NCBI RefSeq assembly: GCF_964204645.1
Contig: NC_134030.1
Location: 11,925,947-11,989,946 of the forward strand
Direction: 5' to 3'
Source of the DNA: Tubulanus polymorphus
Taxonomy: Eukaryota; Animalia; Nemertea
DNA length: 64,000 nt
The notes under the pieces are model-generated. The model was not told the DNA's origin and ran no database searches. It worked only from the letters and a program-made list of their open reading frames with translations. The number at the start of each line of letters is the position of its first letter. Position 1 is the stretch's first letter. The translations under genes and the position numbers were made by a program. Shown piece after piece: positions 1-64,000 of the stretch.

Positions 1-23
1 AAAACATTCGACCGACTGTCAGT

Positions 24-97
24 GAGCTCGGTGGTCTAGTGGTATGATGCTGCGCTAGTAATTTACTGGCCCGGGTTCGAGTCTCGCTCTATCTGCT
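24..97 (+). pseudogene. tRNA-derived sequence (SINE head or tRNA pseudogene)
   Basis: Pol III A-box TGGTCTAGTGG and B-box GGTTCGAGTC at tRNA spacing, with a T-arm CGGG/CTCG. The acceptor and anticodon stems do not pair properly. Confidence 0.6.
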
Positions 98-1299
98 ATT
101 TTTCTCTAACTCTATTCTCCACACTTTCCTTGAATTTTCTAAGTCGTGCACCTCTGTACGCATGCTCGGTGTTAATCGGCCAATCAGCAACAGTTATTAG
201 CGTACAGATCCTAGTCCTGTACGAATAGCCTCCAGAGTAATCCGTACAGGTCCGTACGAGTAGCCACAGCGTTTTCAAAAAGCTTGGGTAGGGCGGGAGG
301 TTTATTTTTCATTTCAGATCGAGTGTTGTAAATGATATACGATTGATAAAGTAAAGCAGGTTTTCCATCGAAACATTTTTTATTTTAACTCTTCATACGC
401 ATAAAAATACGCCACAATGCTACGACGGCCACAATGCTACGACGTACCGTTTTCGTCGTTCAATAGCGGTTCGGAACCGTCATGTGTCCCGGCGCTGAAT
501 TCCGCATAAAAGTCTGCAATGCTAACATCGGCCTCTACGTTGCAAGAGAACCATTCACTTAGAAGACTCGAAGACCCGTCACGAGCGATTGAAGCTATCA
601 CAAGCGGCATTGTTCAATTTGCACAACAGGCACGCGACTGGAAGTGTGGCGCCACAAGCAATACAAATACAATTCAATTCATAGAACTTTATTAACTTAG
701 ATTTTAAAATCGATCTAAATACGCTCCACGACCGGAAATCCACGCTGTGAACGCTCCATAACCGAATATTGACTTCAATTTGTTATTCAGTGAACGCACT
801 TCGTCGATAAATCATTTGGTTTGCTGCTATACTGTCCTACAATTGACATGAAACGGTAGCTATGGCAAATATTTTCAATTGGAACCAAAATAGAACACAA
901 TAAAAAAAAATGGATTGGGTATTTTTCGTAGGGTCGGGTGGGGACGATAAACAACTAATTTTTTTTATTTGGCCTAATGATGATAACTTTCATAAGGAAG
1001 TTATTTTAAGAATTTAAAAAACTTTTCGGAAAAATTGTTCTGTGGCCTTTATTGGTATGTAATGACTTACATATGACGAGTATCCGTGTATTCATGTGTA
1101 TGTCTTCCCATATAGTTTACACTATTCAATCCAGAATTTATTTGGCTATTCGATTTAGGCCTACTTGTAAACAAATTGTATTTGATTTATCATATCAATT
1201 ATTAATATAATACTAATATGAATATTAATATTTGTAAAAATGTTGCCATAGCAACTACTAAATAGAATATTACTAAAAATGTCATATCGACGTCATTCA

Positions 1300-1860
1300 G
1301 CATTTATTACTATTCGACTTATGGTCTATGATCGTGGTGAGTTTCAAGGTCATTGGTTTTTGCATATGGCCACCAGAGGGCGTTTAACAATCATTGGAAA
1401 GTTGTAGCTCATGACATGGTCTATGTTTGTGGTGAGTTTCAAGGACATTAGTTATTCTATATGGTCCATAGAGGGCGTTGAATAGTAGAATAACTTAATA
1501 TTTCCTTATTGTATTGGTACCTCGGCACATTTTCTTACCATGATCAATTGCAAAGTTGTAGCTCATGACATGTTCCATGATTATGTTGAGTTTCAAGGTC
1601 ATAGGCTTCGCTTATGGTCACCAGGGAGCGTTGAATAGTAAAATTACTTAGTATTTCCATATATTGGTAACTAGGCATATTTTGTTACCACAATCAATTA
1701 AAAATTGTAGCTTCTGACATGTTCTATGAGTGTGGTGAGTTTCAAGGTCATTGGATTTTTCAAGGTCATTGGATGGGGGCGTTGAATATTGAAATTGTTA
1801 GATTGTTGAACATTTTAAACCACTTCCCAAGTGGGCATGGTATCCCTGGACCCCTAGTTT
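1300..1860 (+). mobile_element. 3' part of a Helentron-associated non-autonomous element (HINE/DINE-1-like) with ~180-bp core tandem repeats
   Basis: Core repeats (AAAGTTGTAGCT...GAGTTTCAAGGTC...CACCAGRGGGCGTTGAATAG) and the end CCCAAGTGGGCATGGTATCCCTGGACCCCTAGTTT match the full copy at 24612-25813. Confidence 0.75.
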
Positions 1861-2299
1861 AGATACATATAGCATTTTTTGGAGCATAGATGTCATTGAA
1901 AAATTCAATTAGGCCTATGTATGACTGATAGTGATATAGTGTGGCAGCACTTAAAAACATGATGTGAAATCTATTTCCAACAAACCTGGTGAAGAGAATA
2001 GATTTATTTGAGTCCTGTTCAGGAACAACCTGTCTACTCTGTAAGAAGTTGCCGAGTTCTATTCTACAATTATATTTCGTGTTATGGAACAGTTTGCTTG
2101 TAGTGCGGACTAAGGATACAGTATTACATTCTCTGCGGTGTTGAAATGGATAATTAGCTCCCGATTTCTTTTTGCTGTTTACATCTATTTCTAGTTCATA
2201 CTGCTTGATGCTTTTCTGGCAATCAGATGCCATGGCTTCCAATGGATGCATGCCACATCTGAATTTTTTTCAAATTGTGCCCAATAAGCATCTCTAGAT

Positions 2300-2520
2300 T
2301 GTAACAGTGGACATGTTGAGCAGATCGTGGAATCCAATCCCAGTCTTTCGACTAAAGGAAATAATTATCCTGGAGGCTTCAAGAGAGTTAACACGCAAGA
2401 CCTTTCTCTTGGATATCACAACTAAATCTAACTTTATTATATGGTCCAACATTAGTTAACATACAACAGAACAGATGTCTCCACTGTCTAGTGGTGGAAA
2501 GTAACGATTACATTCTCACA
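2300..2520 (-). repeat. copia 3' LTR
   Basis: Direct repeat of 9946-10166; preceded on the minus strand by PPT TAAGTAGGGG (2521-2530). Confidence 0.97.
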
Positions 2521-2977
2521 CCCCTACTTAATCTTTACTTTTTATATTCCAAAATAATCTACACTTTTTGAACTTTAACATAATCATACAGTACCATTAC
2601 TGAGACCTTGTAATAATGAACTGACATACAAACCTAATTCTAACCAGTCACATCCTTGTTTAGCACAAAACATTTTACACGTATTTATTTACAGTTCTGT
2701 TAACCTTTTCTGGTTTACTACAGTAAGCATCATGAAAATAATCACTTTGGCATCCTGTTTCAAGAAAAACATTAGACCTCACACTAACATTACGATAAAC
2801 AATTGACATTTTTCGACTTTGAAAACTATAGCTAAAACTAGTTCAGATAGATAAATGATATTTTACCACCACCAAAAATATTTTTCAATCATAGACACTA
2901 AAAACTACAACTATATATATTCATCATTTTTCAATGTAGGCTAACAGCTTTTATCCAACCACTTTGTGTAAAGTTTA

Positions 2978-4061
2978 CTACAAACCAAAAATATAGAGTT
3001 TGAATCTAACCAATTTCTCATGTACAGCAGGCTTTGTGAAAATATCTGCTATCATTTCATTTGTGGAGCAGTATATGAGTTTGGCTTTTCCTGCATTTAC
3101 TTCAGATCTTACAAAATGGTATCTAATGTCAATATGCTTTGATCTTTTATGCAGGACCGGGTTTTTGGATAAGGCTATCGCTCCCTGGTTGTCCTCATAA
3201 ATCACAAAAGCTGGGTATTTTCGATTTGTGTCAATACTCATCAATTGACGCAAGAATAAACCTTCCTGCGTTGCTGCTGCAAGACCCATATATTCCGCCT
3301 CACACGTAGATAATGCCACAGACCTTTGCTTTTTGCTTTTCCAAGAGATAACTGGCCCTTGTTTGGTCAAGCTAAAACAGTATCCACTAATACTGGTTCT
3401 GTCCCCTTCGGACGAACCCCAATCAGCATCTGAATAGCCAATTAATTCTAAACCTTCGTTACACCTTTGGAAACTCAATTCATAATCTAATTTACCCTTT
3501 ATGTATCTTAGTACATGTTTAAGGGCAGTATAGTGCACCTCCTTAAGATCTGACAAATACTGTGATAACCTCGTAACCGCAAAACATAAATCAGGTCGGG
3601 TACACGTCATAGCATAAATGAGGCTGCCGACAATTTCTCGGTATTTTGTATTACCACAGGATGCTGGTTCAGTAAAACTATCAAACATTAACTTTTGTTC
3701 ACAGGGTGTTTTTCTAGGTTTACATTCCGACATGCCATACTTTTGATAAGAAACGTTTCTGGTTCATTTCAACATTTCCATCAGACTGGTTGAACTCAAT
3801 ACCCAGAAACCATGATAGCTGACCCATATCTTTCATTTTGAACCTTTCCTGTAATACATTCTTTGTTTCAGATACCAATGTTTGATCACTTGCAGCAATA
3901 ATGAAGTCATCTACCCATGCTAATATAATTACAATCCGACCATCTGACAATTTGCTATATAGACATTTGTCAACATCATTCTGTGTGAAACCATTTTCAA
4001 GCAGAAAATCATGCATAACTGGATTCCAGTTTCTACCGCTTTGCTTTAAACCATATAATGA
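2978..4061 (-). pseudogene. pol: copia RT C-terminal part and RNase H (frameshift near 3725)
   Basis: KSLYGLKQSGRNW, AWVDDFII, GYSDADW, STCEAEY, EDNQGAI, KHIDIRYHF, ADIFTK. Confidence 0.95.
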
Positions 4062-5200
4062 TTTTTTGACGCCTTATAAAACGTTACCATTATGAAACCT
4101 AAACAATGTTAACCATTCAGCGTCATTTTACAAACGACAACCGTAAATCGATGTGCAAAACGTCACAGGTTTATGTGTACACATACAAGCTATTTGGCAA
4201 AATATTATTGATAAAGATGTAGAATGGCTCCCTGTGATTATATAATGACGTCTATTTGAACGTCGAAATGTTATATTGCATTGAATATCATGAGAAGACG
4301 TATTGTAATAGTAAAGGATGTATGATTATATCAGGAGCGGCAGGCATAAATAGAAATGATAAGTAAATCGGACTATTCGGTTAAATGGCGGATGTATACA
4401 CGATTTGGAAGTCTGATATAAAAGTCAGACCCTGACATGGGGATGCTAGTGGAATGACGAAGCTATCTACGATCTGAGTAGGGCCGGCGTGAATTTCATC
4501 GGTGGCTACAAGCGGTCTATATAAAAACGTGTTAACATATAATTTCAATATTCAAATGTTTTAGAAAATATGTTTGATATAAGGGGTATGCAAGTTTCAT
4601 GAGATTAGCAATTTATAATAGCATAGCTGTCATATACGGCTCCGCGTCCATTGATGGCATGTGTATAAGGTGACAATTCAATTCAATACTTTATTGATCC
4701 TTATTACATTGAAATTCCGGGATAAAATTTAAAAAACTTACAAATCTTAAAATAAGAAAATACAAAATACAAGACACACGGTTAATTCATACAGAATAAC
4801 ATGAATAAGTTCTTTAAATGACAATGTCTACTTCAACCCAGACTCAAGTCTAGGATATCGAGTGACAGCCAAACAGGGCCCCAGGACCGGGCCGGCTGGC
4901 TACACGATATGCTCAACGTCATGATGAAGCAAACATCCAAAGAACTCTTTCTTCAACCATGGAGGCAATGAAGTTGCAGACCAGCTTAGAGGCAAAAGTG
5001 AATCGAAGTCGGTCACAAGTTGACAATTTTTTTTAAATTAGACTAGTTGAAGACTGTATCATCTACCCAATCGCCAAATCTCATGATTCCCCAAATTTCT
5101 TAAAACTTCGATTTCAAATTTGCAATTCCACATTAGCTTCTCCCAGAAATTCTACATTTTTTCGCAGGCGTCAAATAATTTATTAAAGTTAATTTTCTTG
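4062..5200 (+). mobile_element. Non-autonomous Helentron-type (HINE-like) insertion in the copia RT
   Basis: Interrupts VWKLK|KSLYGLK in a T-run with no TSD; sub-terminal inverted repeats TTTGACGCCT (~4065) and AGGCGTCAAA (~5166); ends in an AT-rich stem followed by CTTG|TTT. Confidence 0.6.
4679..5020 (-). mobile_element. 5'-truncated LINE 3' end (L2/CR1-like) nested in the HINE
   Basis: Minus-strand tail AATAAAGTATTGAATTGAATTG; candidate 8-bp TSD TGACAATT at 4671-4678 and 5021-5028. Confidence 0.45.
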
Positions 5201-5562
5201 TTTCAGTTTCCATACCAACATTTCACAATTTTCTGATCTCTGTTCGAATCCCTCGGGTTGTTCTACATATATCTCAACATCTATAGGGGCATTTAGGTAT
5301 GCGGTCTTTACATCCATTTGATGTAGAACTAAATCATACTGAGCTGCCATTTGCATCAAAACTCTAATAGATGTCATCCTAGCTGTTGGTGCAAATGTTT
5401 CGTCATAATCAATACCTTTTACCTGGGTGAAACCCCTAGCCACATACCTGGCTTTATGCAATTTACTTTGATCTTTTAGCTCTTTGACAGTGTACACCCA
5501 ACGACCCCCCACTACTTCCCTGCCTTCTGGGAGAGTGGTCACCTCATACGTGGAATTTTCCT
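5201..5562 (-). pseudogene. pol: copia reverse transcriptase, middle segment
   Basis: GRWVYTVK, KARYVARGFTQVKGIDYDETFAP, QMDVKTAYLN, YVEQPEGF. Confidence 0.93.
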
Positions 5563-6097
5563 TTAACCCTTCGTGAGCGCACCATTTTTGACAAGTTTTG
5601 CCACCAGAGCGAAGCCATTTTTGGGGTAATTTCAGGCCTTTTGACCTTAAGTTTTTAACTGCCTGCCACAGTAAAACTACTAAATGGATTCACATATAAC
5701 TTTCAGATATAATGTATATTGACCACAGGATTATTTTACACTGGTCATCATGGCGATTGTTGTCGTTGCCATGGCAACGGTGAAATTCAAAATGGCCGCC
5801 GCGTGTATAGTTTCTCATTATTTTCTCAGAAAAAATCCAATTCTGCCAAACTGGGATAGGTTATGGTTTCAAAACAGCACTAAAACAACTGCCAAACATG
5901 TTTTCTATCAGGCAATAGTCATAAATTGTAATTCTTTCATGTACTTTGGGAAATTTTGAACTTATGTGGTAGCTATATCAAGTACCGAAAAATTTGAAAA
6001 TTTTGACTGAAGTGCAATGAATGAAAGTTTATTAGTTTTCATAACTACAGGAATCCATATAGGGTATATGCATATGGAAATAGAATACCTGTATGTG

Positions 6098-6135
6098 TTT
6101 ATATATATATATAAATATTTATAAATATATATATA

Positions 6136-6223
<88 letters not shown>

Positions 6224-6235
6224 AATATATATGTA
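6098..6235. repeat. (TA)n microsatellite inside the piggyBac 3' region
   Basis: Long interrupted TA run. Confidence 0.95.
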
Positions 6236-6348
6236 TACGTATATACACGTTCCGAAAATGATACTTATCAGTATGTACAATATGTATTTTTCATGTTCTT
6301 TCAAATAAAAACACCATAAATGTTTCAAGTTTACTGTTTGTTACATTT

Positions 6349-8432
6349 TTACAGTTTTCCACCACTGAAATTTTTGGTTTTTGTTGCTGCTTCCTCTTTT
6401 GGGGCCTTATAGTTCACAACTGAATGATATCGCAACATACACTCTGGGTGGAGGGGTGGGCGGTCCCCACATTTGCCGCACATGTATACTGTCTCATTAC
6501 GAAATGTTTTGCCCAGTTTTCGATCAGAGCACACTTTGCATTCTTTGGGGTTGTCTCCTTTCAATTGGAAATGTTGGGCTCCATCAAGTCTTTCAGGTCT
6601 TTGTCCACCATCAACAGGTGGTGGTACTCGGGCATTAGCCCGGTGTGGTGACATTTCATCGACCAACGCCAAGCGAAATTTCTTCGTTGACAGAATATCC
6701 TTCTTGTCAATGCCACGGAGTTCACAATCCTGCCGGTAGAGGATGTGAGCATTCACAATCGTAACTTCGAGGAGATGAAAGAATACTTTCCTCCACCATT
6801 TTACAGATATTCGCTCGAAGTTATAGTAGCAAGCAAGCTGGTCGTTGACATCGACGCCACCCATGAGTCGATTGTAATCGGTGACACATGTAGGCTTGTG
6901 GGGTGGGGGGTCACCGACTTTCTTTGCAGGAACATCAGTCCACTCATCAGGACCATGGATACTTGATATCATGGTAATGACACGCTTGTCTCTCCATTGG
7001 AGTACCATAATATCGTCTTTCCTTGCCGCCCTCGAATCGCCACGCTTCATGCCCTTGGTGTTTTTCATGGGCGGAGGCAGGCCTTTACGGTTAGGCATCA
7101 TTGTACCCAGAATGGAAAAGCCATTGTCAATGAGCTTTTCTGCTAGAGCCATGGTCCAGAAAAATCTGTCCATGACTAATATATGACCAGGAGTGTCGAT
7201 GACATCAACAAGATTCATCACAGTCTGGGCAACTTTGGTCAGTTCCGCATCATTTGGAGCATCACCGGCACCAGGGTCCTTCCCCAGATACATGTTCATT
7301 TTGTACTTGTATCCAGTACTGGAATCAGCTAGGGCATACATTTTCATTCCCCACTTGATGGGTTTTTTTGGGTTGTACTGTAAAAACCCAATGCGGCCCT
7401 TGAATAGAATCATGGTCTCATCAATTGAGATCCCCTCGCCGAGAGTAAAGAATTCTTGACTTTTGCTGTTGACATGCTCAACAAGCCATGCTACTTTGTA
7501 TCCTTTGGATGGCAAAGGCTGTCCTGCAGCTATGGGCTCTGCCACATGAAGATTCCAAAACAAGAGTAGAAACTTATCACGTGGCATGCTGTTATGGAAA
7601 AATGGGATATTTATGGTACGCCGTGCTGAGAAGTAGTCCCAAATTGATGGCAATCTGATGACACCCATGTTGATCACCATCCCAAAAACACAAAGTAAAC
7701 CTTCACGAGTAGGTGTTTTCCACTTTCTCAGCCTTGAAGATGGTTTTAGGTCTCCAGCCACGTCAGTTGCAGCAATTTTCGCTCTGGTTATGGTGTCGGT
7801 GTTTTGACAAATTCGATCGAGCACGTGATTTGGCCAAAATAGCCAAAAGTAGTCAATCGGCTCATGTCCTACCATTCTTGGAAGCTGAAATATATAAACA
7901 TATATGTGTACTAAATAACTGTTCTATAACCAAACTAATTATTCTGAAACAGAAATGAAAATTCTGGGTTTGTTCCCTAGAACTGGAAAAAAAACGGTCA
8001 AAAGCGGCTCCCGACTATGGTCGGGATAAAAAATTTTTTACAATAGGTCACCCCTGACAACAATTTTCATCATAAAAAGATAAGAAAACTCACCGTTGGA
8101 CCTGGGTTTCCTGTAAATTCTTCACTAACAGGATAATCCGGTCTATCACCTTCAGTGATATCCTCCCAGTCCTCGTGGTCAAGGATTCGATGCTGCAAAT
8201 TTTGGGGTGGGGCAACGTTATCCCCTACCCCCCCATCACCATCGTCCTGGCTATCTTCCGATTCATCGCTGCTCACTTCGACTGACCCTCTACTTTCATC
8301 GTTACTAACAACTAAACCGTTTGAAGCAACGCTACTGGTTGAAATATCCGATAATTCATCACTATCTGAGTCTCCTTCAAAATAGCTGAGTGCAGCATCA
8401 AGTGTTATTCGTTTCGGCCTGGAGGCAGCCAT
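6349..8432 (-). CDS. piggyBac transposase, two exons (8432-8094 and 7884-6349), predicted 624 aa, apparently intact
   Basis: Phase-0 GT-AG intron 7885-8093 joins the acidic N-terminus to the 508-aa ORF. DDD triad SIDET / VMDRF / GGVDVNDQ. C-terminal Cys-rich domain CKVC...CGKC...HPEC...H. Confidence 0.93.
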
Positions 8433-8645
8433 TACTACATGTATTAGTACGTCACAGACACTTGTTCAGTTAGTGTACACCGTGCGCTATCGATTTACAA
8501 CGCAGATTAGTTTTCCGGTAAGCCACGGGTGGCAGCATCTCCTAGAGCAATCGGAAACAAAATTTCCGACTAAAGTCGGGAGACGCTTAGTTTCCGTGGT
8601 TGGAGATTTCCCGACTATAGTCGGGAGCCGCTCACGAAGGGTTAA

Positions 8646-9580
8646 GGAGTTCATTTCCTCTTCCATTGCCTGGCGCCATGGGTTCGAATCTTCACGTGAG
8701 GTAGCTTTCTCATAAGTACATGGGGTATCATGACATACACAGAATTTATCAGCAAAATAATCTGATTCACACATTTCTACATAATCATCGAGGTACTCTG
8801 GCCTTTTTCGTTCTCTTTGTGGGAACCTTTTTGCTTCAACATCTTGCCTGTCACCACCCCCAACATTTTGAGGGTTTTCTACTGAATCTACACTACAAGA
8901 AAATTTTACACAACGTACTGCTCTGACAACCCTAGTATCTGGGAAATATACCAAATAGGCAGGACTACAGCCCTCACATCGGGTTTTCTGCTATGGAACT
9001 GTGACATTTTCCCTAACACGCATGTTTCACATTCAAAATCTGACTTATCTCCAGTGATTTTCATTCCGTCTGCAACATTTTCTAATTTTATGATGTCACT
9101 CGGGTTGCAATGTCCGAGAATTTCATGCCATTCTTTCAGGCTATGAGAATCATTCTTTCTAGAGATAATGTTATTTAGATAATACAGTCCGCCTCGCTTT
9201 TCAATAGGAAACTTCATGTCGTTTTTCATCAGATCTCCTGAATCATCTGTGAACTTGACTGATGCACCATTTTCTGTCGCAACTCTCACAGAAAATATGT
9301 CCTGCTTGAAACTAGGGACATCTAGAGCGTGGTTGAGGGTGGCCTCATGGGGAATTCCATCTGAATCACACAGGGTGACCCTTGCTATTCCCCGCGCTTT
9401 CGCCAAGTTATTATCTCTGGTGCCATCGGCCAGTTCAATATAATGTTTTTCGGGAACAAAATCTTTCTCATAGCTCACAGATTTTGATTTATCGTTAACA
9501 ACATGGCTAGTAGCCCCACAGTCTATTAACAACGGATCTGGCAACGGATTTCCTGTACACGATTCAATCTCATCGTTCAA
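8646..9580 (-). pseudogene. pol: copia protease, integrase zinc-binding region and SH3-like tail; integrase core deleted; start of RT
   Basis: LLIDCGATSHVVND, WHEILGH...CETC, then a jump to YLVYFPDTRVVRAVRCVKF and TPCTYEKA...WRQAMEEEMNSL. Confidence 0.9.
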
Positions 9581-9615
9581 TTTGAACTGGAATGAATTAT
9601 CATTTTGTTCATCCG

Positions 9616-9960
9616 TTACAGTATTAACTCCAGCACCCTGGCCACTTTCGGTTTTCCTTTTGACATATAATGTTCCTTTAACAATTCAAGTCCTTTCTGG
9701 CCATCATTCTTCGTTTCGCGCATGACTAATGCCAGGGATCTGTCGTCCAAACATTGGACCAATTCGGCGTACGCTTCTGCTTTTTTGTTTACAAGTAGTT
9801 CTCCAGTAATATTAGTAGTCCCATAGATTATCTTATGTAATTTAATAATCCGCATGTAACCTTCAAATTTAGTCAACCACAGTTCGAACTTATTCTCGTC
9901 CCCATCAAATATGGGTGCCCTTGTTCTGCCACTGGGCCCATAACCTGTTACAGTGGACAT
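9616..9960 (-). pseudogene. gag: copia gag N-terminus (truncated by internal deletion)
   Basis: MSTVTGYGPSGRTRAPIFDGDENKFELW...AYAELVQCLDDRSLALVMRE..DGQKGLELLKEHY; no CCHC knuckle remains. Confidence 0.85.
9931..9945 (-). promoter_or_regulatory. Primer-binding site GGTTATGGGCCCAGT (half-tRNA-iMet type)
   Basis: Immediately follows the 5' LTR; same sequence as the Drosophila copia PBS that uses a cleaved initiator tRNA-Met. Confidence 0.9.
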
Positions 9961-10166
9961 GTTGAGCAGATCGTGGAATCCAATCCCAGTCTTTCGACTA
10001 AAGGAAATAATTATCCTGGAGGCTTCAAGAGAGTTAACACACAAGACCTTTCTCTTGGATATCACAACTAAAACTAACTTTATTATATGGTCCAACATTA
10101 GTTAACATACAACAGAACAGATGTCTCCACTGTCTAGTGGTGGAAAGTAATGATTACATTCTCACA
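9946..10166 (-). repeat. copia 5' LTR
   Basis: Direct repeat of 2300-2520; followed on the minus strand by the PBS. Confidence 0.97.
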
Positions 10167-11174: not shown

Positions 11175-12181
11175 CTAGGTAGAAGGGTGGAGATTGAGGA
11201 GGTTCAACTTCTGGTAGTCCCTGAACCAATTCCGGCGTGATAGGCAGAGTTTCCTCTCCAGTTTAAGTAAGTGTCTACGATTACGACGCAATTTTTTACC
11301 ATTAACATCAATAAAATATGATCTTTCATAATTATCAGCAACTGCTGTTACGCGTGCCGGTTGCCAAGTGTCTTTTGCAGACTTTTTGTACCTCACTATT
11401 TCACCTGGCCTCAGTGTAGGCAGTGATTTGGCGGCTCTGTCATAATATTTCTTGTACAACTCTTGCCTTGACTGAAGATGCAAGTGATCCCTATTAGAAT
11501 TTGAATTGATGTTTTTAAGATGACCTTGGCAACTGGCCGTCTGGTTTTCAGATGTCTACCCATCAATAACTCTCATTGGCTTTTACCCACAACCTCTAGA
11601 GGTGTATCTCTATATGCCATAAGAGCAAGGTAGATGTCTCCACTAGACTCCTCGGCTTTCGTTAATATGTTTTTAACTGTTTGTACAAAACGCTCAGTTT
11701 GTCTATTTGATTGTGGAAATATTGGACTGCTAGTATCATGAACAAAGCCCCAGTTTCTGGCAAAGTTCTGAAAGTCTTTACTAGTAAACTGCCGTCCATT
11801 ATCATTATAGGTAATGTCGGGTATTCCATGACAAGCGTAGATTGACTTCAACGCATTAATCATTGATTTACTCGGTTCATCTGGCAGTAACGCAACTTCT
11901 GGATACTTCGAGTAGAAGTCAACGCAGATCAGATAATCCTGATGTCTGAAGTGAAATAAATCACATGCCACCTCAGCCCATGGGCAATCAGGCATTTCGT
12001 GAGGAATTAAGGGTTCCTTGCGATTCGTGTTTCTCGTTTCAAGACATATTTTGCAGCGCGATACCATGCGTTCGATGTCTTGATTCATTTTGGGCCAATA
12101 CAATATATCTCTCGCTCTGCGTTTACATTTCACGATGCTGAAATGCGACTCGTGTACGATTTTGAGCATTTCTGAACGCAT
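11175..12181 (-). pseudogene. pol: Gypsy integrase (frameshifted)
   Basis: HESH...CKIC zinc motif; CDLF, DNGRQF, TERFVQTVK. Confidence 0.88.
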
Positions 12182-12296
12182 TTCGGCGAACTATGATACA
12201 CTGTCTGCGATGCGCAATGCCGTCGATAACAGTAATTTCATCACGAAACGTCATATATTTTCCAAGTTCTGGATTGATATCTCGCTTATCTGTTGG

Positions 12297-13586
12297 CTAA
12301 CCGATCATGACCGCAGTGCAAAGTTGCTGCAATACGGGAACTGATTTCGTTTCCTCGCGAAACTGATTCAAGCGCTCTGGCGTAACTGGAAGATATTTCT
12401 CGACGCTACAGACTTCCAGTTCTTGACAGTCTGCCGTTTCATCTAAACATGCATGACTGAGCGCATCTGCCACATACATAAGTTTACCCGGTTTGTAAAC
12501 AATGTTGAATTGATATTTACGCATTGCCATGCACATTCCTTGTAATCGCGGTGTAACCTTATCTAACAACTTCGTACAGATCGACACTAACGGCTTATGA
12601 TCCGTCTCGATTGTAATCTCGCGACCATAAATATAGTCGTGGAATTTCTGTGTTCCAACGACGACCGCTAGGAGTTCCCGTTCTATTTGCGCGTACCGAC
12701 GTTGTGTATCATTTAAACTGCGTGACGCGTACGTGACAGGTTTCCCTTCTTGTAATAAAACAGCTCCTAGTCCCGTTGAACTTGCATCCACATCACCCAC
12801 TATACACTTCACGTCTGCTATGTTCTCATAAATCTGATTCATTTTCTTGCAGAAAACTTCAGGCGCCGATTTTATCCCGAACGGTAATCGCAGATATCGG
12901 TATCTACCTAAGGGAGTATTAAAAGTTGTCAGTCTCGAACTATCCTCGTCAAGGACGACCTGCCTGAAACCAGATGTAGCATCGAATCTGGAGAAGTACT
13001 GCGCATTAGCACATTTATTCGCTATGTCCTTAATAGTGACCATAGGATAGTGTTCGCGACGAATCCCTCTATTCAAATTGAGCGGATCGATACAAATTCG
13101 TAGATTACCATTTGGTTTGGTTATGATCACACAACTACTGACCCAGTCTGTAGGTTCATCAACTTTCGTGATCACCACTAGTCCCTCCATGCGATCAAGT
13201 TCAGCTTTGAACTTTGCTTGCATTGCTAATGGTACCTTTCTCGGCGGCTCCACTACTGGAGGTACAGTAGGATCTAGTTCTATATGATGTTCACCAAGAA
13301 GACGTCCTAGTCCCTGGAAAACATCGCTGAATTCAGCCAGTATCTTGTCCCTTGTCTTTGGCGTTGAAGTGTCTACCATCATCACTCTAGTAACTAGGTT
13401 TAAATCAGTACAGGCACGATGTCCCAACACCGGGCTTACATTGTCACTTACAATGTAGAAATCGAGTTCCTTTTTACAGTTCTTATACTGACATGGTAAT
13501 TTTCGAAAGGTCACTAGTTTAGTAGCTGTATTCGTGATGACAGTTGTTGCTGATTTCAGCTGATTCCCTTTCTCGCGGAAGCACAT
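12297..13586 (-). pseudogene. pol: Gypsy RT-RNase H with the YxDD region deleted
   Basis: The ORF jumps from VKCIVG directly to DVDASSTGLGAVLLQ. Confidence 0.88.
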
Positions 13587-16877: not shown

Positions 16878-17363
16878 TCAACCCAAATCTAATGAAGAGT
16901 TGATGTGCCTGGATAATAATTGGTTATGTGGAGAAAAACCAGTATTTAAATTAGTAGATAAATTGGATTTCGAAAGTTTACATATAAGGGATGATTCCAC
17001 TATGTGTCTCTTATGAATATCTTTACAAGGATAAATAAGTTTCGAATTCTGAAAGTCAAATTGGTGATTGGTTGTAAAGACATGATTCGCTATTCCACTC
17101 TCAGGCTTTTGGTTGCGGATATCTATTTTGTGTTCTTTAATACGCTGACCGAGATAACGTCCCGTTTCGCCGATGTACATCATATTACAGTCTTTACATG
17201 GTATCTTATAGATCCCGGACTCAATTAGCTCACTGTTGGGTTTATTTTTGGTTAAAACATTAGTGAGTTTGTTATTATACTGAAAGACTAATCTAGTGTC
17301 GATGGTGCTTAATGTGGATTTAAAGCGTTCCAAAGTAGGTAAATACGGGATTATAATATTCAA
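16878..17363 (-). pseudogene. GIY-YIG endonuclease domain of a Penelope-like element
   Basis: GIYKIPCKDCNMMYIGETGRYLGQRIKEH...IANH...VES...N. Confidence 0.92.
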
Positions 17364-21486: not shown

Positions 21487-21487
21487 G

Positions 21488-35615: not shown

Positions 35616-35619
35616 GACA

Positions 35620-46120: not shown

Positions 46121-46139
46121 CTGGTTCGCAGACACTGAC

Positions 46140-50559: not shown

Positions 50560-50820
50560 GGGAACTTATGTGCTGACCCTGAATGATAAAAGTAGATTCC
50601 ATTCAGATACGCTTGAAACGCTGCAACCAAAACTTCTCATTTTAAAAGTACTATTGTATGATCGAATGTTTTCAAGAAAATGTTTTGATATCGTATCAGC
50701 ACCTAGAAGTAGATTATGAAGATATTGTGGTGGAGTTTGATAAATTAGGAGAGTTACTTCACTATTTAAACAACACATTCCAGACGGGGGCTTATAGAGT
50801 TCAGCCTTTTGCTCAATGTA
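50560..50820 (-). pseudogene. Helitron RepHel N-terminal fragment
   Basis: MCCLNSEV.L...QTPPQYLHNLLLG....SKHFLENIRSYNSTFKMRSFG. Confidence 0.8.
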
Positions 50821-50933
50821 TCTGACGGTAAGAAGCTGGTTTGGAACGACGGCCTATTGTTTTTTTTTTTTTTTGGATCGTTTCTTGGGCAGCATCATAT
50901 TCTCGGACACGGAAAGAATCTACAAAGCGTGAT

Positions 50934-51126: not shown

Positions 51127-51127
51127 C

Positions 51128-51609: not shown

Positions 51610-53730
51610 CGCCGTCTGTTACCTGTTGCACAGTTGCTCTGCATCCATCGTCTGCATCCATATCATTTGTACTGCTGATTCATTAAAGTATTCAGCCGTA
51701 GGCTTGATTCATCCAGTGATTCCTGTGTAGAAGAGCTATTAACTGGTGATTGCACTAGCAGATTGGAGTTCACTTTTTGTTCCAGCTCTTTGTTCCCTCT
51801 CTGGTTCACAACTAGGTCCTGACCTACATTTCTCTCGGGGTCACAGGTGACCCACTGGGCTGGCTATTATATGAACAAAATCTTCCCATATGGCAAATAA
51901 AGAAATTCATTACATATTCTCTGTTCAATTTTATTGGTCCTTTAGTAAAGCCTTACATTGATTGATTTGCACTTATTTTTCACATATTCTCTATAACAGT
52001 TTTGATTCTCTGTGAACCAAACGGGAACAGCACTCAAATTGTGCAAATTGTTTCAGTCTTAAGACTGCAAACAGCTCAATTCGCCTTTTATCGGCCATCA
52101 TTGGCCAGTGAGCAACAAGGTTTTATCAAACATCAACCGATGGATTAACTCTGACCCTCTGTGAAGGAACCAGGTGACTAAATTGAATAGTACATACGAC
52201 ATATGTATGTTCACAAATACACATATAACACATATACATACATACGGACATTAGAAATTTACCTTAAATGTAACCTCATTTTTGTGCCGATACTTCACGG
52301 CTCAGCTGCATGGTATAGGAACTTTGAAAATAGAAATAAATTCGAGATTAGAACATGTTAGGCATTTAGCTGCTATGGAATCTTTCGAACGTCTGAATGT
52401 GAGTGGGTAACAATTTCTCTTTAGTTGCTTCACTCATTTTTACTGAGGATGGATTCGAATTATGGTATTTCTATCTGATACATTTAGACTGCAATTTAGA
52501 TGATAATAGGGGTTTTGAGGTTCTTTTGTTTGAACTAACTAACCAGTATTATCTTTTTAAAAACATGGAGTCTTTTTTTGCGAATAATTAAATCAATGGG
52601 CAGTCATCTATTTGAGTCTGAAAAATCATTGGACCATCCATCACATTTTCGAATGATACCTTGTAAAAAAGTTAAGAAATGATTATCAATTTCATCAGGA
52701 TGTAACATTTTCAAGAGCTTTGACTATGTCCTCTCCAGACGCAACCTCTTGGCTAAGAATGAACATTCCTTCCATAAACAAGCCAAAGTGTTTCAGGTGA
52801 TTTCCTGGAAGAAAAAAAAGGAATACTGTAGAGGAAAATCCAGTTATTCCATTCTACTCTTTTCCAATATGTACACTGTTTTGCGGAATGTGGTAAGCGA
52901 GATACTTCATTTTGCAGAAAAAATATTTCTTTATCTTAAATTTACCTCATCTATGCAAATACCAATGTACCAATCATTTTCGTGGTACTCTGAAACCAGA
53001 GAATTGCTAAATGATGAGCAACCCCAATTTCTGCACAATGGAGGTTGTCAACTACAAATTTCAACCTTCAAGCATCATAAGGAAGCTAGGACCTTTCACA
53101 CCCTTTTCGGTTCATTATCTTCGACTGCTTTTATTGCATGTCTAATAACCATGTTCTAAAAAGAACGTCTTGGTGGGGATAGACTCGGTGGCCCTGCTTT
53201 AACTGATGGCCTGGATGCACCCGGGACAACTCTATTTCCCATTGATTTATTTGATACTGTGTAACATTCAGCGAGCCAGATGATTTATTTGATATTTTGT
53301 AACATTTAGCGAGCCAGACTATCAGCAGTACAAGATCCACTGTAGAATGAATCTTTTAGCCTATGCCATTAGACCAATGTAAACCTAAGTAAAGTGAATC
53401 ATTACATTCTTCAATAAATGGTTTTAAGAATGTTGTGACACATGTCTTTTCTGTGCCAAACCAAATACCAGCAGTAGATTTAACTTTCTCAACTAAGGAG
53501 GCAGATCATTGATTATCATTTGTAATGACAGGAGTGAAGTTGGAAGAATTATCTTTTGTATGTACTTGATATATTCTTGTTTTACCCCGACAATGCATAT
53601 CACAATGCGTATGTCCATCTGCAGTCCCTGCATTTTTCAAAGTTGAACTGAATAGTGATCGTTATGTCATCAGAGATAATTCATTAAATTGTTGGTGATA
53701 GATCGTACATTGATCCATGATGATGGTTCA
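51610..53730 (-). pseudogene. CACTA/EnSpm transposase fragments, copy set 2
   Basis: FVVDNLHCAEIGV, EWNNWIFLYSIP, HLKHFGLFMEGMFILSQE; paralogous to 48260-48700 and 49640-50270. Confidence 0.65.
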
Positions 53731-53779
53731 AACGCTTAGGCCTTTTTTTAATTAGTTGGAGCACAGATTTTTTAAGGAA

Positions 53780-54709: not shown

Positions 54710-57700
54710 TCAAAGATTTCTCAGAAATTGGTGCATTTTCTCAACCCCATTTGGATATTTGGCAACGATTTTATTAATCAAACCATTCTTTCTTGTAACG
54801 GCCCTGATTTCTTCTGCAGAACGATATTCGTGGAATGTGCGGCGAATGACTCTCTGCTTAATTGCAGTATATTTTTGTCACTTTACTGGCCCCGACTGAT
54901 AAAGAAATTGAATAAGTATGATTTTCCATTTCATCAATGATAACACCTCCTGTGCGACACACTTACCCTTGTTTTTTTCTTCGGGGGGATGGCAAATATA
55001 ATGCTCCCTCGTCCAATTATGTTTCTTCACTCGAGCTTGATTGGTTTGGTTCATCGCCCTCTGATTCCGTCAGACACTTTTCTTCGTTCGTAACCGTCTG
55101 AAAAAGAAGATAAACATTGACGATATAAGCGGCGGCTGTGAATAGAAAGCTGTCATTGATCGAATGAGAAGTCACTTACCGCTGCGGGCTCGCTGGAAGT
55201 TTCACCCTCTACTTCCAACGGGCGTTTGTCTTCAGTCGTAACCGTCTGAAAAAGAAGTTAAACATTGACGATTGAAGCAGCCGCTGTGAATAGAAAGCTG
55301 ATATTGATCGAATGAGAAGTCACTTACCGCTGCGGGCTCGTTGGAAGCTTTGCCCGCCGATTCCATGGCGCTGACGCTTCGTTTCGATTCCAAAACGCCA
55401 CAGTCCAACTACAGAAGAAAAGTGAAATGTCATGCTTGCCAGAACCATTAAATGCAAGATGTATTGAGTCGATCTACATACTCCAAATGTTCTCCTTAAA
55501 GGCCGAGGAGCAGTATAAAAGCCCAATCAATGTCAAAGATGGCAGTACCCATGAAGCAATAGTGCAGTGGAGAGCTCCAACGGTTGAAACTGGAATTCTC
55601 CTATTTTCTCTGTCAGTTATCCGATTTGGACCCTCCTTTTTGTCAGACATATGTATTAATGTGTAATATATTCATTTCTGCAGTCAAAATGTGTTTTAGG
55701 CCCTCCTCTACGAGAAATTAAGCATTTTAGTTGGTATTTCCTTTAAAATTTGAATCTTTGAATGACATAGAGGGAGGAGTTATCCAGTGAATTAGTGTAG
55801 CTCACAGAGCACATAAACAGTAATTTGATACCTATAGTCATCAGTATACATAAACAAAACATAGCCTCATTCATAGTACCAAAATTTGGCAACATCAAAA
55901 CTTTTTCTATGGTCAATGGATCAGTCTGAAATCTCGTACACTTGTTCAGCTATCTACCATCAATGATGTGTCCAAATTTCATGGAAATCGGATAAAAATT
56001 AATGATTTTCAAAAAATTTGAAATGTCTCTAAAATCTTTAATCTTGGCCCTATCTCTACAAAAAAACATCGCTAGCATCAGATTTTCATTCCCACTATGA
56101 CTAGATTACTTAAAATTAGTTTAGAATTTGATATGAAAACTTTTATGAATTTGTCAAATTTAACTGTGTGTGACCTGCTTTTCTGTTGTGAGCCAACCTC
56201 GCTCACTCTAAACATTATAAACAAGATACTGTAGTTAGTGGGACGGCCGATCTCAAGTGTTTGCCACCCGGTTAACTAGCATCCATACTCCTCGGCCTTA
56301 AATCACGCGCAACGTCCATTGTGTGTAGATGTCCCTCCTCCAGGTAGTAGAATAGTTCTGCGGTTTGAGGGCGATGTAACATACCGGGTATATCAGCTTA
56401 GCTTGGTTCGCGTGGCAGCGTCAGTATTACACATAGCTGTTATGATACTCTTACGTATTTAAGTCGGCGTTTTGCCCTTTTTTCCAATGGTGGAACTGAC
56501 GTAGCTGGCTAACGGTCTAAGAAATGAAAACATTAAATATTTTCCATTGAATTTGTTAATGAAATGTATATTTATCTTACTTATTGAGATATGTGGCGTT
56601 GAGTTCCACTCCCTCGTTTGTGCGCCAAATTGTTTCATCAGCTGTTCTTTCGTAGAAGCGCTTGGGAAATAGAAGTAACATGTGATACGGGGTTCCTTGG
56701 ATGAATCCGACCCCGTATGTAGCAGTTGTTTTGTGTCAGACAACCTGAAAAAGTTTTACATGTATTTTTGGAACTTGCTCTCTTCAATGAATAAATAGTT
56801 CAAAATACCTTGATGCTGTACAGATCATGCTTTTCGTCGTGTTTCGCCTGCAATACGTGGTTCAGGGTGATCCCTATTGTCAGCGAGGATCGGCTCGCAC
56901 CCAGAGCTGTGACGACAGGGAGCAGAAATTTTGGTACTAAGCGAAAACCTCCCGGGGTAAAATCTACATGCGGGTTCTTGAGGAGTTGAACAGCTTCGAT
57001 GGACATGTCAGAACTCAAAATCTGCTTTACATCATTACGTTTCAGGAGGCGCGCTTCATGAAAAGAAAGAATATATACAGATGTCGATATTTTTGCAAAA
57101 GGGTTACAAATGATAATACTCGCCTTTCTGGAGTTCATGGACCTCATGGAGTCGTTCTTTGTGGACCTTTTCATTGACCTCCGCCAACCTAACCAGCGGA
57201 CGTTCTAATCTGGTTAGGGTTTCTTCAGAGCAGCCGCAATCTTCATGTCCAAACTAAAAGTCACAATCATCAATATGTTCAGTTGAAACATTATTAATGT
57301 GGATATTGTAATAATACTCACATCTAGCATAAATTCTATAAGTTTCTTTCGAAGTGTGAACATATAACTCCGAATCGTCCCCGGCTGTTTCGTTTCCATT
57401 TCTTGTGAAATCCACAAGGACGCGCTCTTTGCATTCACTTTGCCTTTAGCAAACTTAAAATAATTCATAGTGTCGAATATATCCGGTGACTGTCTCGTCT
57501 GTTGAAACTGGCTTCAGCCATTCGTGATAGACTGCCTGAAACTCTGCAAGGAAGACAACGAACACTTAATGCAGCTCACACAAAATATGAGAAAAATTAT
57601 GTAGGGACTTACTTTCCGACAGCACAACGGGAACTTCATCCGATTCGCTAGTGCTGCTGCTGCTGCTTCTGCCACCGCCACCGCTGCTGTAGCTCACATT

Positions 57701-57996: not shown

Positions 57997-60232
57997 CTTA
58001 GAATATTCATATACATGAATAAAATATATATGAATAACATATAAATTGATAGATTATTTAATATAAAAGTGTTAGTAAAGTGTGAGTAAAAAAGTAACGA
58101 GTAATTAACGAGCTCTTATAGAATAGATAAATAGATATATTTTAAACATATTTCAATATTTATATTTGTATGAGTTAGATTTTTAAACATTAAAAGTGTC
58201 AGTAAAGTGTGATTGAAATAATTCATATATACATGAATAACATATACCGTAAATGAATAAAATATAAATGAATAAAATGTGTAAAATCAATTTAAAAAAA
58301 AAAATTTAGTATTAAAATGGAAGCAAATAAGTACTACTGTGCAACATGTAAAATCAATATAGATAAATCCCAAAAAGCAAGACACAATAAAACTAAAACA
58401 CATTTAGAGAATAAATTGAAATTAGAATATGAAGATGATATATTAGAAACTAAATTAGATGAATTAAATAATGAAAAAGAAACATACAAATGTGATACGT
58501 GTAATCAATCATTCAGTGATAAAAGATATTATAAAGAACATTTAAAATTTAAAAGTCATATTAGAAATAAGAATAATGATATTTTAGGTAAGGATTATTT
58601 TGATGAAGATAATGATAAGAAACAGAAGACAATTAAAAGAATAAGAAATAAATTAAACAATAAAAGACCATACATGGAAGATGTAAGAAATTATATTAAT
58701 TCATTAGATAATAAAAAAGATATAGAAATAACCGAAGCATTTAAAAGTGATATTTGTCCAGCAGCTATTGAGTTTAAATTCCATAAAGAAAAAACATTAG
58801 AAGAAAATAAAAAACATTTAGATAATATGAAAAATATGATAAAAATAATTACAGATGTTAAATACCCTATAATTAGTATATCTTCTAAAGTTAGATTTAT
58901 AAAATCTGAAGATAAACCAATATATGATATAAATTCTCATTCACAACATATTATATCTAAACAACATATAGATGATAAATTAGATAAATGTTATAATGAA
59001 ATAGAAACTAAAATAGAAGAGAAACATTTTGAAGGATCAGGTTTAATATTTGATGAAATAATATTTATGACTTTACATGTTTATAACACAAAATATAATA
59101 AGTTAACTAAATCAAAACCAATAGATGAAAATAATGTATCATATTATAAAGAACCAGATATTGAAGCATCAAGTTATATTAAACTACCATTTAAAACTAA
59201 TGCTGTTATAAATGTACAAAATTTTGATGATAAATGTTTTTTATGGGCAATAATTAGTTGCTTACACCCAGTTGAAGATTATAAACAACATAGTTTTAGA
59301 TTAACTCATTATAAACCATTTGAAAATAATTATAAGATAGATAAGTATCCTGTTAGGATTAAAAATATCCCAAAAATAGAAAGAGATAATTTTAGAATAA
59401 ATGTATTTGATTTAATCAAATTACCAAAAACAAAAGGCAACAATATAAAACATTATACATTAGAACCTTTATGCCTATCAAAAGATTATGATTCAAATGA
59501 TGTTATAGATATACTATATTATGAAAATCATTATATGTGGATTAAACAAATCGATTTATTTTTTAAATCAGAAAATGATCACCATAAAATATATCTTTGT
59601 AGAAAATGTGTACATAGATTCAGTAATGAAAGTACATTATTAAATCATAAACAATTATGTGATAATCATGATTATTGTAAATTAGTTTTACCAAATGAAA
59701 AGGATAAAATATTAGAATTAAAAAAAATATGATTACAAAAATAAAGTACCATTTGTAATATATGGATATTTTGAATCATTAAATAAAGAATTAACTGATC
59801 AAGATAGAAAAGAAATATATTATAAAAGAAAGAAATTAAATTCTAATGAAAATGATTTTTCAGATGAACCACCAAAAACAAATACAATTAAAAAGATTCA
59901 TCAATGCTTTCGGGTTATATATAAAATCTGATTATCCAGAACTAATTGAAAGTGAATATTATCATTATAGAAATGAAAATGTTATCAATCATTTTTGTGA
60001 CTTATTAATTGAATATGAAATAAGATTTAGTAGATTATTGAATACAAATAAAGAAATAATTATGACAGAAGAAGATAAAGAAGAATTTGTGTTTTCAGGT
60101 AAATGTTATTATTGTGAAAAGATATTTAATTATTAAGTTAAAAAAGTAAGAGACCATGATCATTTGAACGGAAAGTTTTGAGGCGCAGCACATGAGAATT
60201 GTAACTTACAAGCTAAGAAAATTAACTTTGTA

Positions 60233-61677
60233 CAGGGTGTCCCATTAATTACTATACATAAAGAAATGTCTGTCATTTCCAAACCGCTTGAGATAAATCA
60301 GCCAAATCTTCAGGAAAGATGGACTACAATAATACTTTTCGTAATATTAAATCAGTTTATTAAAATCCCATTAGTTTACAAAATATGCTCAATGTGAGAG
60401 CCTTTTGATTTTATCACATGATTCAGTCTATTATTGAAATTTCTCAGTACGTTGCCCAGTACATCGCTGTTGATAGCGCGGATCTCTTTGCGGATGTTTC
60501 TCTTTAAATCATCGATAGTTACTGGTTTGTTTCGGTACACGGTTTCCTTCAGATAGCCCCACAAGTAAAAATCCAGTGGATTTAGGTCAGGTGAGTATGG
60601 GGGCCAGCTGTTTGTAGTCTTCAACGATATGATTCTGTCACCAAAATGCTTGCGTAGAACATCAATCGTTTTGCGTGCCGTGTGACATGTCGCCCCATCT
60701 TGCTGGAACCACACTTGATTGAGACTCCCTCCTTGATGTCTGCGAAGTTTTGGAATGAAGTAATGTGTCAACATCTTACGATAGCGGGCTCCATTCACAG
60801 TGACTACGTTGCCTTCTTCCTCAAAAAAGTATGGCCCAATAATGTTGGATGACCCAAGAGCACACCAGACAGTACACTTGGTGACGTGAAGCGGCTTCTC
60901 AGCAATCAAATGGGGATTCTAAGAATCCCAATATCTATAGTTCTGACTGTTGACTTGACCAGTGAGATAGAAATGGGCTTCATCACTAAACCAAATCTTC
61001 TGAAGCAATTCCGGTGATGCCTGCAGTTCTTGTGACATCCATCGCGCAAACTGACGTCTTAACACCTTGTCCTTATCTCTCACTCGCTGTCTGATTTGAA
61101 TTTTGTATGGATAGAGAACCAGTTCATTGACCATAATTCTGTGGATTGATGATCTGCTTATTCCTGTTTCTGATGAAATTCTTCTAACAGATCTATAGGG
61201 GTTATCGTCCACTGCAACTCTTACTTTCTCAATAGATTCGCCTGAGGTGGAGTGTTTAGGTTTCCCATTCTTCTTTCTTTGGTCTTTAACTGAGCCATTC
61301 TCTTCGAATTTCTTTATCAGGTCAAACACTGCTTTTCCTGTCGGAGCTGTTTTAGTGTTAAACTTGACTTTGAATCTTCTTAACAACTTTGAGACAGATT
61401 TATTCTCATACCACCAGCATACTATGTAGGTTTTTTCTTCCAGACATGGACTTAGACATGGTTTAGTAGTGTTTTATTCTAATTCAGAAATACCAAAAAT
61501 CACTACAACAATGTAATCAGTTGCTACGAAATCACTAAGCAAATTACCATAGCAACCACGGTAATAATCCAAAAGTACCCTTACCTTCTATCATTTGGTG
61601 GAAAATCAAAACATTTCATTAAGAAATGTGAAGGATACAGGCAGTTCTTTATGTATAGTAATTAATGGGACACCCTG
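60233..61677 (-). mobile_element. Tc1/mariner DD41D (rosa/Visitor-type) transposon, 1445 bp
   Basis: Perfect 33-bp TIRs CAGGGTGTCCCATTAATTACTATACATAAAGAA; TA TSDs at 60231-60232 and 61678-61679; removal restores polB NFV|PVIFHN. Confidence 0.97.
60376..61459 (-). pseudogene. DD41D transposase (one in-frame stop at ~60919 and a frameshift near the start)
   Basis: WFSDEAHF, QQDGATCH, then 41 residues to SPDLNPLDFYLWG. Confidence 0.92.
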
Positions 61678-63816
61678 TACCAGTAATATTTCATAATCTA
61701 TCAGGATATGATGCGCATTTATTTATCAAACAGTTATGCCATAAGATAGAAGAAATTAATAATGAAATAGAAAGATTAAATTCAAATAGATCAAAAGATA
61801 AAATACCAACTTATAAATTTAAAATGTTAGCTAAAAAACATCTGAGAATTATATATCTTTCCAATTTGGGTGCCTAAGATTTATAGATTCATATAGATTT
61901 TTAAATAGTTCATTAGATAATTTATCAAAAAGTTTAATCGATGATGAATTAAAAATATTAAAACAACACTACCCAAATAATGATGATTTCCAATTAATGA
62001 GATATAAAGGCGCAATCCCATATTCATTTTATAAATCACATAATGATTTTAATATAACTGAATTATTAAAAGAACAATTTTATGATGAATTAAAAAATGA
62101 ATATGTTAAAGATGAAGTCTATAATAGAACATTGAATATTTGGAATCATTTCAAAATAGAAAATCATGGACAATTAGTAGATTTATATTTAAAATCAGAT
62201 GTATTATTATTAACTGATATATTCGAAAGGTTTAGAGATGTAAACCTAAAATATTTTAACATTGATCCTTGTCATTGTTATTCTAGTCCAGGTTTAAATT
62301 GGGATTGTGGTTTAAAATTTACTGATATAAAAATGGATTTGTTAACAAATATAGATCAATTATTATTATTTGAAAAATCTATAAGAGGAGGAGTTTCAGG
62401 TGTATTAGGCGATAGATATTTTAATGTAAATGATAACCCTGGATATAAGTTATTATATATAGATGCAAATAATTTGTATGGTTGGGCAATGATGGAACCG
62501 CAACCTTATGGAGTATTTGAAAAAAGTGAAGTTTTACAACTATGAAAATAATGATAAATTTGATTGGAAGAAAAGAATTCTAGATATTGCAGATGATTCA
62601 GATACTGGTTACTTCTTTGTTGTAGATTTAGAATATCCTGAACATATTAAATTTAAATCTAGAAATCTAGCATACTGCCCAGAACATAAAACTGTAACTC
62701 AGGAAGAATTATCAAATTATCAAAAAAGAATTAAACCCGAAAATCATATTCATACAGAAAAGTTAACGGTAACTCAGGAAGATAAATATAATTATGTAGT
62801 GCATTATAGTATGTTGAAGTTTTATTTGAACCAAGGAATGGTTCTAAAAATTGTACATAGATATATTTCATTTAGTCAATCTAAATGGTTAGAAAAATAT
62901 ATAGACTTTAACACCAAACAGAGAACAAAAGCTAAAACTGATTTTGAGAAAGATTTCTTCAAACTAATGAATAATGCATTCTATGGTAAGACTTGTGAAA
63001 ATATTAGAAATAGAAATGATATTGAGTTAGTAAGTAATGGCAAAAGGATAAAGCATTTACAATCATATCCTAAGTTTTTAGGTAACAGAATAATTGATGA
63101 AAATTTAGCTGCAGTTAAAATGAGAAGAACTTCTATGAAATTTAATAAACCAATCTATGTTGGTGCTTCAGTTTTAGAAATATCAAAGCTATTGATGTAT
63201 GAATTCTATTATAATGTATTACAACCTCATTTTGGAGAAAAACATATAGAAATCTTATATTTTGATACTGACAGTTACATATTAAAGATAAAAACTAATA
63301 ACATAACAGATGATTTAAAAAAATTAAAACATCATTTTGATTTTAGTAACTATCGTAAAGATCATGAATTGATAATAAAAAGCGACCCGGGAAGTTTAAG
63401 GATGAATTAGGTGGTGAAGAAATGATTGAATTCATTGGTATTAGATCTAAAATGTATTCATATAAAACTAAAAAACATGAAGCTAAAAAGTTAAAAGGAA
63501 TTACTAAAAGTGTAGTAGAAAAGAATATTCATTTCAAAGATTATATCAATTGTATATTCAATGAAGAAGTTAGAAAACATAAGATGAAATGTTTAAGATC
63601 AGAAGATCACGAGATGTTTATTGAAGAAATTGAAAAGGTAAGTTTGAATCCATTTGATGATAAAAGATATATTTTAGATGATGGAATTCATACAGTTGCT
63701 TATGGTAGCAATTTAGATGAATATCTAAAGTTCAAAAGAGAAGAAACAAAAGAGAACGAGATTATGAACAGGATTCTAACGTGTTAATCAAATTTTAATA
63801 AAAATATGTATTATAA

Positions 63817-64000
63817 ATGGAGAGTAAACAAGCAAACAGTGAGTACAACAAATTATTTCTAGATAGAATAAAAAATACTTCAAATGTTAAATCAGTAGAT
63901 TATAAATTTAAGAAGTTAAAAGAATTAACAATCCATAAGAAATATCTAATTACAAATATTGTTACAGTTACTAACAAATATGGAGATAAATTAGTTATAC
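63817..64000 (+). CDS. Start of the next Polinton ORF, possibly a small OB-fold ssDNA-binding protein; runs off the window
   Basis: ATG in TATAAATG context 30 bp after the polB stop; open to the window end: MESKQANSEYNK...LKELTIHKKYLITNIVTVTNKYGDKLVI. Confidence 0.55.
   Translation, partial: MESKQANSEYNKLFLDRIKNTSNVKSVDYKFKKLKELTIHKKYLITNIVTVTNKYGDKLVI

Follow-up and report, generated by a model that had tools for sequence, protein, structure and literature searches.

Does a run of unrelated transposons that nearly all lie on one strand mark a locus that captures mobile DNA, or can it be an accident of the order in which they landed? The question is raised by a 64,000-nucleotide stretch of the ribbon worm Tubulanus polymorphus, which we call the window (positions 11925947-11989946 of contig C6, NC_134030.1, at 52% of that 23.04-Mb contig). 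It was originally predicted, from a reading of the letters, that transposon insertions of many classes are arranged here in a 20:2 split in favour of the minus strand (p ~1e-4), and that the window is therefore a candidate for a flamenco-like source of PIWI-interacting RNAs (piRNAs) transcribed from a single strand. We find that the direction of the orientation bias is real, that 20:2 overstated it and that it is limited to about 40 kb. A chance run of orientations, with no dedicated mechanism, is the explanation that we favour, at about an even chance of being right.

The analysis covered the window and 100 kb on each side, 264 kb in total, within an assembly of 268 Mb in 77 contigs, which corresponds to ~4,184 windows of 64 kb. 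All stop-to-stop open reading frames (ORFs) of at least 100 amino acids (aa) were scanned against Pfam, with the exception of a 100-aa frame over a TA repeat (5965-6264) and a 102-aa plus frame opposite a piggyBac gene (6878-7183). ORFs of 60-99 aa outside the confirmed coding stretches were pooled by strand and compared with Pfam, first at E <= 0.01 and then at E <= 0.3.

Orientation tally and chance expectation

Fourteen separate insertions were verified in the window (Table 1), 11 on the minus strand and 3 on the plus strand. The two-sided binomial probability of such a split is 0.057, compared with 1.2e-4 for 20:2, so that the lean of the original prediction towards minus stands and its size does not. 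Because a Polinton-like element carries genes in both directions and a pair of Penelope-like pieces is inverted, both structures can be set aside, which leaves a count of 10:1 (p = 0.012). Over the ~4,184 windows of the assembly, chance would yield ~240 windows at p = 0.057 and ~50 at p = 0.012, figures that are upper bounds, as not every window holds as many orientable elements. Tens of equally biased windows are thus expected by chance, and the verified bias is not beyond chance genome-wide. A count of orientations from a single window accordingly needs a genome-wide background to carry meaning.

Under the reading that we favour, about 14 independent insertions of many classes would have accumulated in a transposon island, and those of the first 41 kb would have come to face almost all the same way by chance; no selection on orientation would be needed. 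The independence that such a count assumes deserves scrutiny. If several relics had arrived together, by segmental duplication, by capture or as a composite element, there would be far fewer events than insertions, and there are local reasons to raise the point: two calls of the original prediction proved to be a single insertion, the Penelope pieces form a single inverted structure, and a local duplication (48.2-50.3 versus 52.7-53.7 kb) involves sequence that is otherwise unique. When positions 1-6000 and 18601-38600 were searched as DNA, however, no multi-element copy was found elsewhere, only single-family repeats of at most 1.75 kb, and segmental duplication is rejected for these parts. 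Together with two Helitron relics from different families, this makes the insertions look independent, and we regard a joint arrival as very improbable.

What the island resembles most is the ordinary nested transposon island of low-recombination DNA in the middle of a chromosome. Several unrelated classes are present with insertions inside insertions (a piggyBac in a copia element, a 1.14-kb repeat in the copia reverse transcriptase (RT), a Tc1 element in the Polinton-like element), young copies are mixed with old ones, host genes were not found and the flanks are mixed in orientation. What sets it apart from such islands in general is a stretch of 41 kb in which about nine elements share one strand, a run longer than is typical, though not beyond chance genome-wide. 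The block can for now be taken as an ordinary transposon nest that is well annotated.

Several observations weigh against an explanation by chance alone. Between 1 and 41 kb there are nine verified minus elements and a single plus piece, itself one half of the inverted Penelope pair. From 1 to 40 kb, all ten successive 4-kb bins show negative AT skew, the longest run in the 264 kb; since the sense strand is A-rich in 20 of the 25 verified coding stretches, negative AT skew fits minus-sense content. A map of amino-acid composition agrees with minus polarity over the same 1-40 kb, although it mostly repeats the AT skew and is not independent evidence. As a control for ORFs without a Pfam match, we asked on both strands whether their genomic relatives sit in long open frames read in the same direction. 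Six of nine minus ORFs passed (1862-2269, 22676-23143, 21116-21424, 35424-35816, 37320-37658 and 50569-50853), compared with none of the seven tested on plus away from the elements known on that strand (Fisher p ~0.01). Among the minus ORFs that did not pass, 40883-41374 is a high-copy short repeat, and 24004-24324 and 56803-57204 are ambiguous. The MULE-like and Merlin elements that had been called on minus are represented by weak Pfam matches only (MULE, E = 0.058; IS1595/Merlin, E = 0.074), and both lie on that strand; a third weak match, Phage_int_SAM_5 (E = 0.049), is on plus.

The bias had been claimed for the whole window. It holds for 1-41 kb and ends there, with a plus-strand long interspersed nuclear element (LINE) at 42-46 kb and the plus-strand Polinton-like element from 58 kb onward; the right third is mixed. 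Both 100-kb flanks are mixed as well, and the right one switches strand repeatedly. On the left lie a plus RT, a plus LINE and a plus Penelope-like element, together with an astacin-like exon and a 1,918-aa open frame on minus; on the right lie a minus gypsy element with a Baculo_F envelope gene, a minus multi-ORF element and a plus Tf2-like integrase.

A possible piRNA source or host transcript

The evidence that defines a piRNA cluster is small RNA of 24-32 nt from one strand together with a long precursor transcript. Were the block a one-strand source of this sort, a plus-strand precursor would begin ~12-20 kb before the left edge of the window and reach to about 41 kb, the insertions antisense to it would be a memory of past invasions, and its putative targets would include copia, gypsy, piggyBac, Helitron, LINE and other families. 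We consider this unlikely. The region is gene-free and dense in transposons, nine to eleven unrelated families are co-oriented, and old relics stand beside young insertions (an intact 524-aa piggyBac; copia long terminal repeats (LTRs) 98% identical). The 1,918-aa open frame left of the window is likewise on minus, and nemerteans possess PIWI proteins (PMC11114477). Set against this are a bias that chance can produce in a genome this large, mixed flanks, and the plus-strand LINE, Penelope RT and Polinton genes within or adjoining the block.

What the block shares with flamenco itself is an absence of genes and a high density of transposon relics, most of which face the same way. The published span of flamenco and flamenco-like loci is 227-1,085 kb; their strand bias is driven only by Gypsy elements, and they are defined by piRNAs from one strand (PMC10643416). 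In length and in the source of the bias the block does not resemble them. The block spans 40-60 kb and not hundreds, its polarity changes inside the window, and the flanks and the right third are mixed. The bias falls instead on DNA transposons, Helitrons, copia and a LINE relic, with one verified gypsy among the 14 elements; of the two Gypsy elements originally called on minus, the second amounts to a possible relic at 30519-30776. The relics stand at 11 minus to 3 plus, or 10:1, and would be mostly antisense to a putative plus-strand transcript; the block, unlike flamenco-like clusters, is described from sequence. A literature search found no small-RNA data for Tubulanus polymorphus; the only nemertean small-RNA library that it found is from Notospermus geniculatus (PMC11114477).

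One form of the piRNA proposal is a compact one-strand source of ~60 kb, from ~20 kb left of the window to ~41 kb, that would trap many transposon classes and not Gypsy-type retroviruses alone, and it too we hold to be doubtful. If it were true, this palaeonemertean would have a mixed-class counterpart of flamenco, one outside the arthropods, and the locus would be the first transposon trap mapped in a ribbon worm. It would also mean that clusters selected for orientation can guard against DNA transposons and Helitrons, and not only against retroviruses.

The same orientation pattern is predicted by a different kind of transcript. If the block lay inside a long plus-strand host transcription unit, for example a giant intron or long non-coding RNA, sense insertions with polyadenylation or splice signals would be purged, and the one-sided orientation relative to the presumed transcript would be like the antisense transposon bias in introns of long genes. 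Such intronic bias is usually mild and concerns mainly retroelements. The exons of a flanking plus-strand gene that this account calls for are not found: over 44 kb to the left, no host exon on plus came to light, and the nearest host-like ORFs are an astacin-like one on minus at -47.5 kb and, recognised by eye, a decarboxylase-like one on plus at ~+153 kb. The plus-strand LINE and Polinton genes also lie in the same stretch. A host transcript is in our judgement improbable, and we return to the chance run as the preferred reading of the elements described below.

Elements of the window and its setting

No credible host-gene domain was found by Pfam among window ORFs of at least 60 aa, in agreement with the earlier impression that no host gene is visible. 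The closest host-like stretches are the astacin-like exon to the left (Pfam E = 4.2e-13) and, to the right, the pyridoxal-decarboxylase-like exon. The window is most likely part of a gene-poor nested transposon island of ~160-190 kb near the middle of chromosome 6, with these two exons as its edges. The elements located in the window are listed in Table 1. All of the original calls that could be tested with Pfam were correct in class and strand, among them copia and the two piggyBac elements on minus, while no confirmation was obtained for the Tigger, CACTA and tyrosine-recombinase elements.

Table 1. Elements located in the window, with their strand and the evidence that identifies them
Element	Position	Strand	Evidence
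Relic A, transposase-like gene fragment of a low-copy family	1862-2269	minus	8 genomic relatives
copia-type LTR retrotransposon, interrupted by two later insertions	2300-10166	minus	Pfam and LTRs
Young 1.14-kb high-copy non-coding repeat inside the copia RT	4061-5202	no strand	copy search
piggyBac transposase, intact open 524-aa frame, nested in copia	6352-7923	minus	DDE_Tnp_1_7
gypsy-type LTR retrotransposon	11178-16532	minus	integrase, RT-RNase H, protease, weak gag
Penelope-like endonuclease-only piece, 5'-truncated	16881-17372	minus	GIY-YIG, E = 1.1e-4
Penelope-like RT body	17455-18588	plus	head-to-head with the minus endonuclease piece
Relic B, low-copy transposase-like family, single insertion	20344-23349	minus	genomic relatives in open frames
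Second piggyBac transposase, degraded	27792-28784	minus	DDE_Tnp_1_7, E = 6.5e-36 and 4.5e-10
Helitron-type helicase relic, family 1	35424-35816	minus	genomic relatives
LINE ORF1 relic	37320-37658	minus	genomic relatives
LINE with ORF1-like 318-aa frame, endonuclease and RT	42120-46169	plus	Pfam and tblastn
Helitron relic, family 2, N-terminal region	50569-50853	minus	Helraiser match
Polinton-like element, continuing beyond the window end	58296-64000 onward	plus	478-aa zinc-finger ORF; protein-primed DNA polymerase B
Tc1/mariner-type transposase nested in the Polinton-like element	60379-61473	minus	DDE_3, E = 4.1e-6; DUF4817, HTH_32

The copia element is bounded by LTRs at 2300-2520 and 9946-10166 (98.2% identity) and has RVT_2 at 3723-4073 and 5192-5689, with Pol_BBD and gag_pre-integrs at 8909-9685. 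Its RVT_2 is interrupted at profile position 117 by the 1.14-kb repeat, for which more than 40 copies at 94-99% identity were seen out of ~4,036 candidates. The nested piggyBac covers positions 2-349 of the 349-position DDE_Tnp_1_7 profile (E = 5.4e-74), and its protein is not on record in public transcript assemblies; the second piggyBac is ~30% identical to it and is thus of a different family. The gypsy element carries Integrase_H2C2 and rve at 11576-12190, RVT_1 and RT_RNaseH at 12300-13604 and a weak Retrotrans_gag at 15977-16408, and an aspartyl protease occurs among the minus short ORFs.

The 3' part of a Penelope element had been called on minus, and the piece is indeed there; the RT body of the pair lies on plus and had been missed. 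The left flank contains another Penelope-like element, and the minus piece shares 52% amino-acid identity with its endonuclease ORF (tblastn). That reference element is on the plus strand and carries RVT_1 and GIY-YIG, and residues 7-366 of its RT ORF match 17509-18588 of the window on plus (tblastn E = 1.4e-103, 62-76% identity). Judged from these alignments, the minus piece is the truncated arm of an inverted pair whose main body is on plus. The CR1 LINE and the DNA polymerase B had been taken as the sole plus elements, and both are on plus as called; with the Penelope RT there as well, they are not the only ones.

Two low-copy relics lie on minus. Relic A has no Pfam match, and in its relatives the matching frames run without a stop for as much as 560 and 454 aa. 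Three hAT-like elements had been called on minus; two of these are the single insertion Relic B, for which no family name was obtained from Pfam or from Atlas, PDB or word searches (the last gave two unnamed matches), and the third was not confirmed. The Relic B ORFs at 22676-23143 and 21116-21424 match the same genomic copies, which sit in open frames of 858 aa (the best, on contig C5 near 12.139 Mb) and 507 aa (on C6); relatives of the former ORF lie in frames of 858 and 841 aa. Relic B is divided by a tandem repeat (37 bp x 6.6) at 21643-21885, and it is only a possible source of a DUF1280 match (E = 2.4e-5) that falls among the minus short ORFs of the window.

Helitron-class elements had been placed on minus, and two relics of different families are found there. 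In the first, residues 2-60 share 55-59% identity with copies in 1830- and 1132-aa open frames on contig C8, where Helitron_like_N lies ~2.4 kb upstream in the same elements. The second matches residues 146-206 of Helraiser (PDB 7lcc, E = 5.4e-6), and its relatives lie directly upstream of Helitron_like_N matches that are distinct in family from those of the 35.4-kb relic. A genome-wide Pfam search gave no match in the window for the hAT dimerisation domain, nor for Helitron_like_N despite the Helitron relic present there; since the latter search misses the window's own relic, the whole-genome Pfam route is too insensitive for degraded copies.

The LINE fragment called on minus is likewise borne out. 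Residues 2-49 of 37320-37658 match open frames of ~350 aa that lie ~2.2 kb upstream of RVT_1, in frames of 1,124-1,283 aa on contigs C3, C7 and C10 and of 347 aa on C6; it is this position of its relatives, ahead of RVT_1 in a second frame, that identifies the relic as LINE ORF1. The plus-strand LINE has Exo_endo_phos_2 at 44076-44465 and RVT_1 at 45394-45936, and matches plus-strand LINE ORFs of the left flank by tblastn.

Polintons carry genes on both strands. The Polinton-like region lies on plus from 58 kb to ~+72 kb, with DNA_pol_B_2 at 61835-62542 (Pfam) and a 478-aa ORF that shares 51% identity with one from a second element, located in the right flank. A Pox_A32 ATPase on minus at +72147 points to a Polinton-like element with genes on both strands. 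In the Tc1-like transposase nested within it, DUF4817 and HTH_32 are helix-turn-helix domains. The region is very AT-rich, with a GC content of 0.22-0.31 over 58296-64000 and the right flank to ~+103 kb, and contains an inverted repeat of 0.7 kb (63290-63998 versus +76903-77621, 87.7%). The second element, which is related and has multiple ORFs, occupies +89.8 to +102.9 kb on the opposite strand, and the gypsy with the Baculo_F envelope gene is situated between the two at +83.6 to +89.7 kb.

Rejected candidates and repeats

Some ORFs of the window were rejected as genes. Those at 29034-29600 (plus) and 40883-41374 (minus) are high-copy short repeats, and 55316-55663 (plus) belongs to a repeat that recurs in short frames at ~70 sites. 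For five further plus ORFs (52683-53156, 31714-32100, 29742-30128, 24115-24483 and 34888-35136), no relative occupies a long open frame.

At four places the window carries a non-coding repeat that is young and very high in copy number: 4061-5202 (1.14 kb), 25990-27564 (1.58 kb), 28671-29353 (0.68 kb) and 40883-41374 (~0.4 kb). Their genomic copies number in the hundreds or thousands, at 93-99% identity, a sign that non-autonomous elements multiplied in recent bursts. A tandem-repeat module of 154 bp, in 2-3 units, lies inside a repeat family of ~1.2 kb with copies in the window at 1387-1751 and 25161-25692; the module family occurs at least 8 times in the 264 kb of window and flanks, in both orientations. 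Finally, the local duplicate joins 48261-50251 with 52728-53738 at 71-78% identity, in the same orientation and with the order shuffled, in a sequence that is otherwise unique in the genome.

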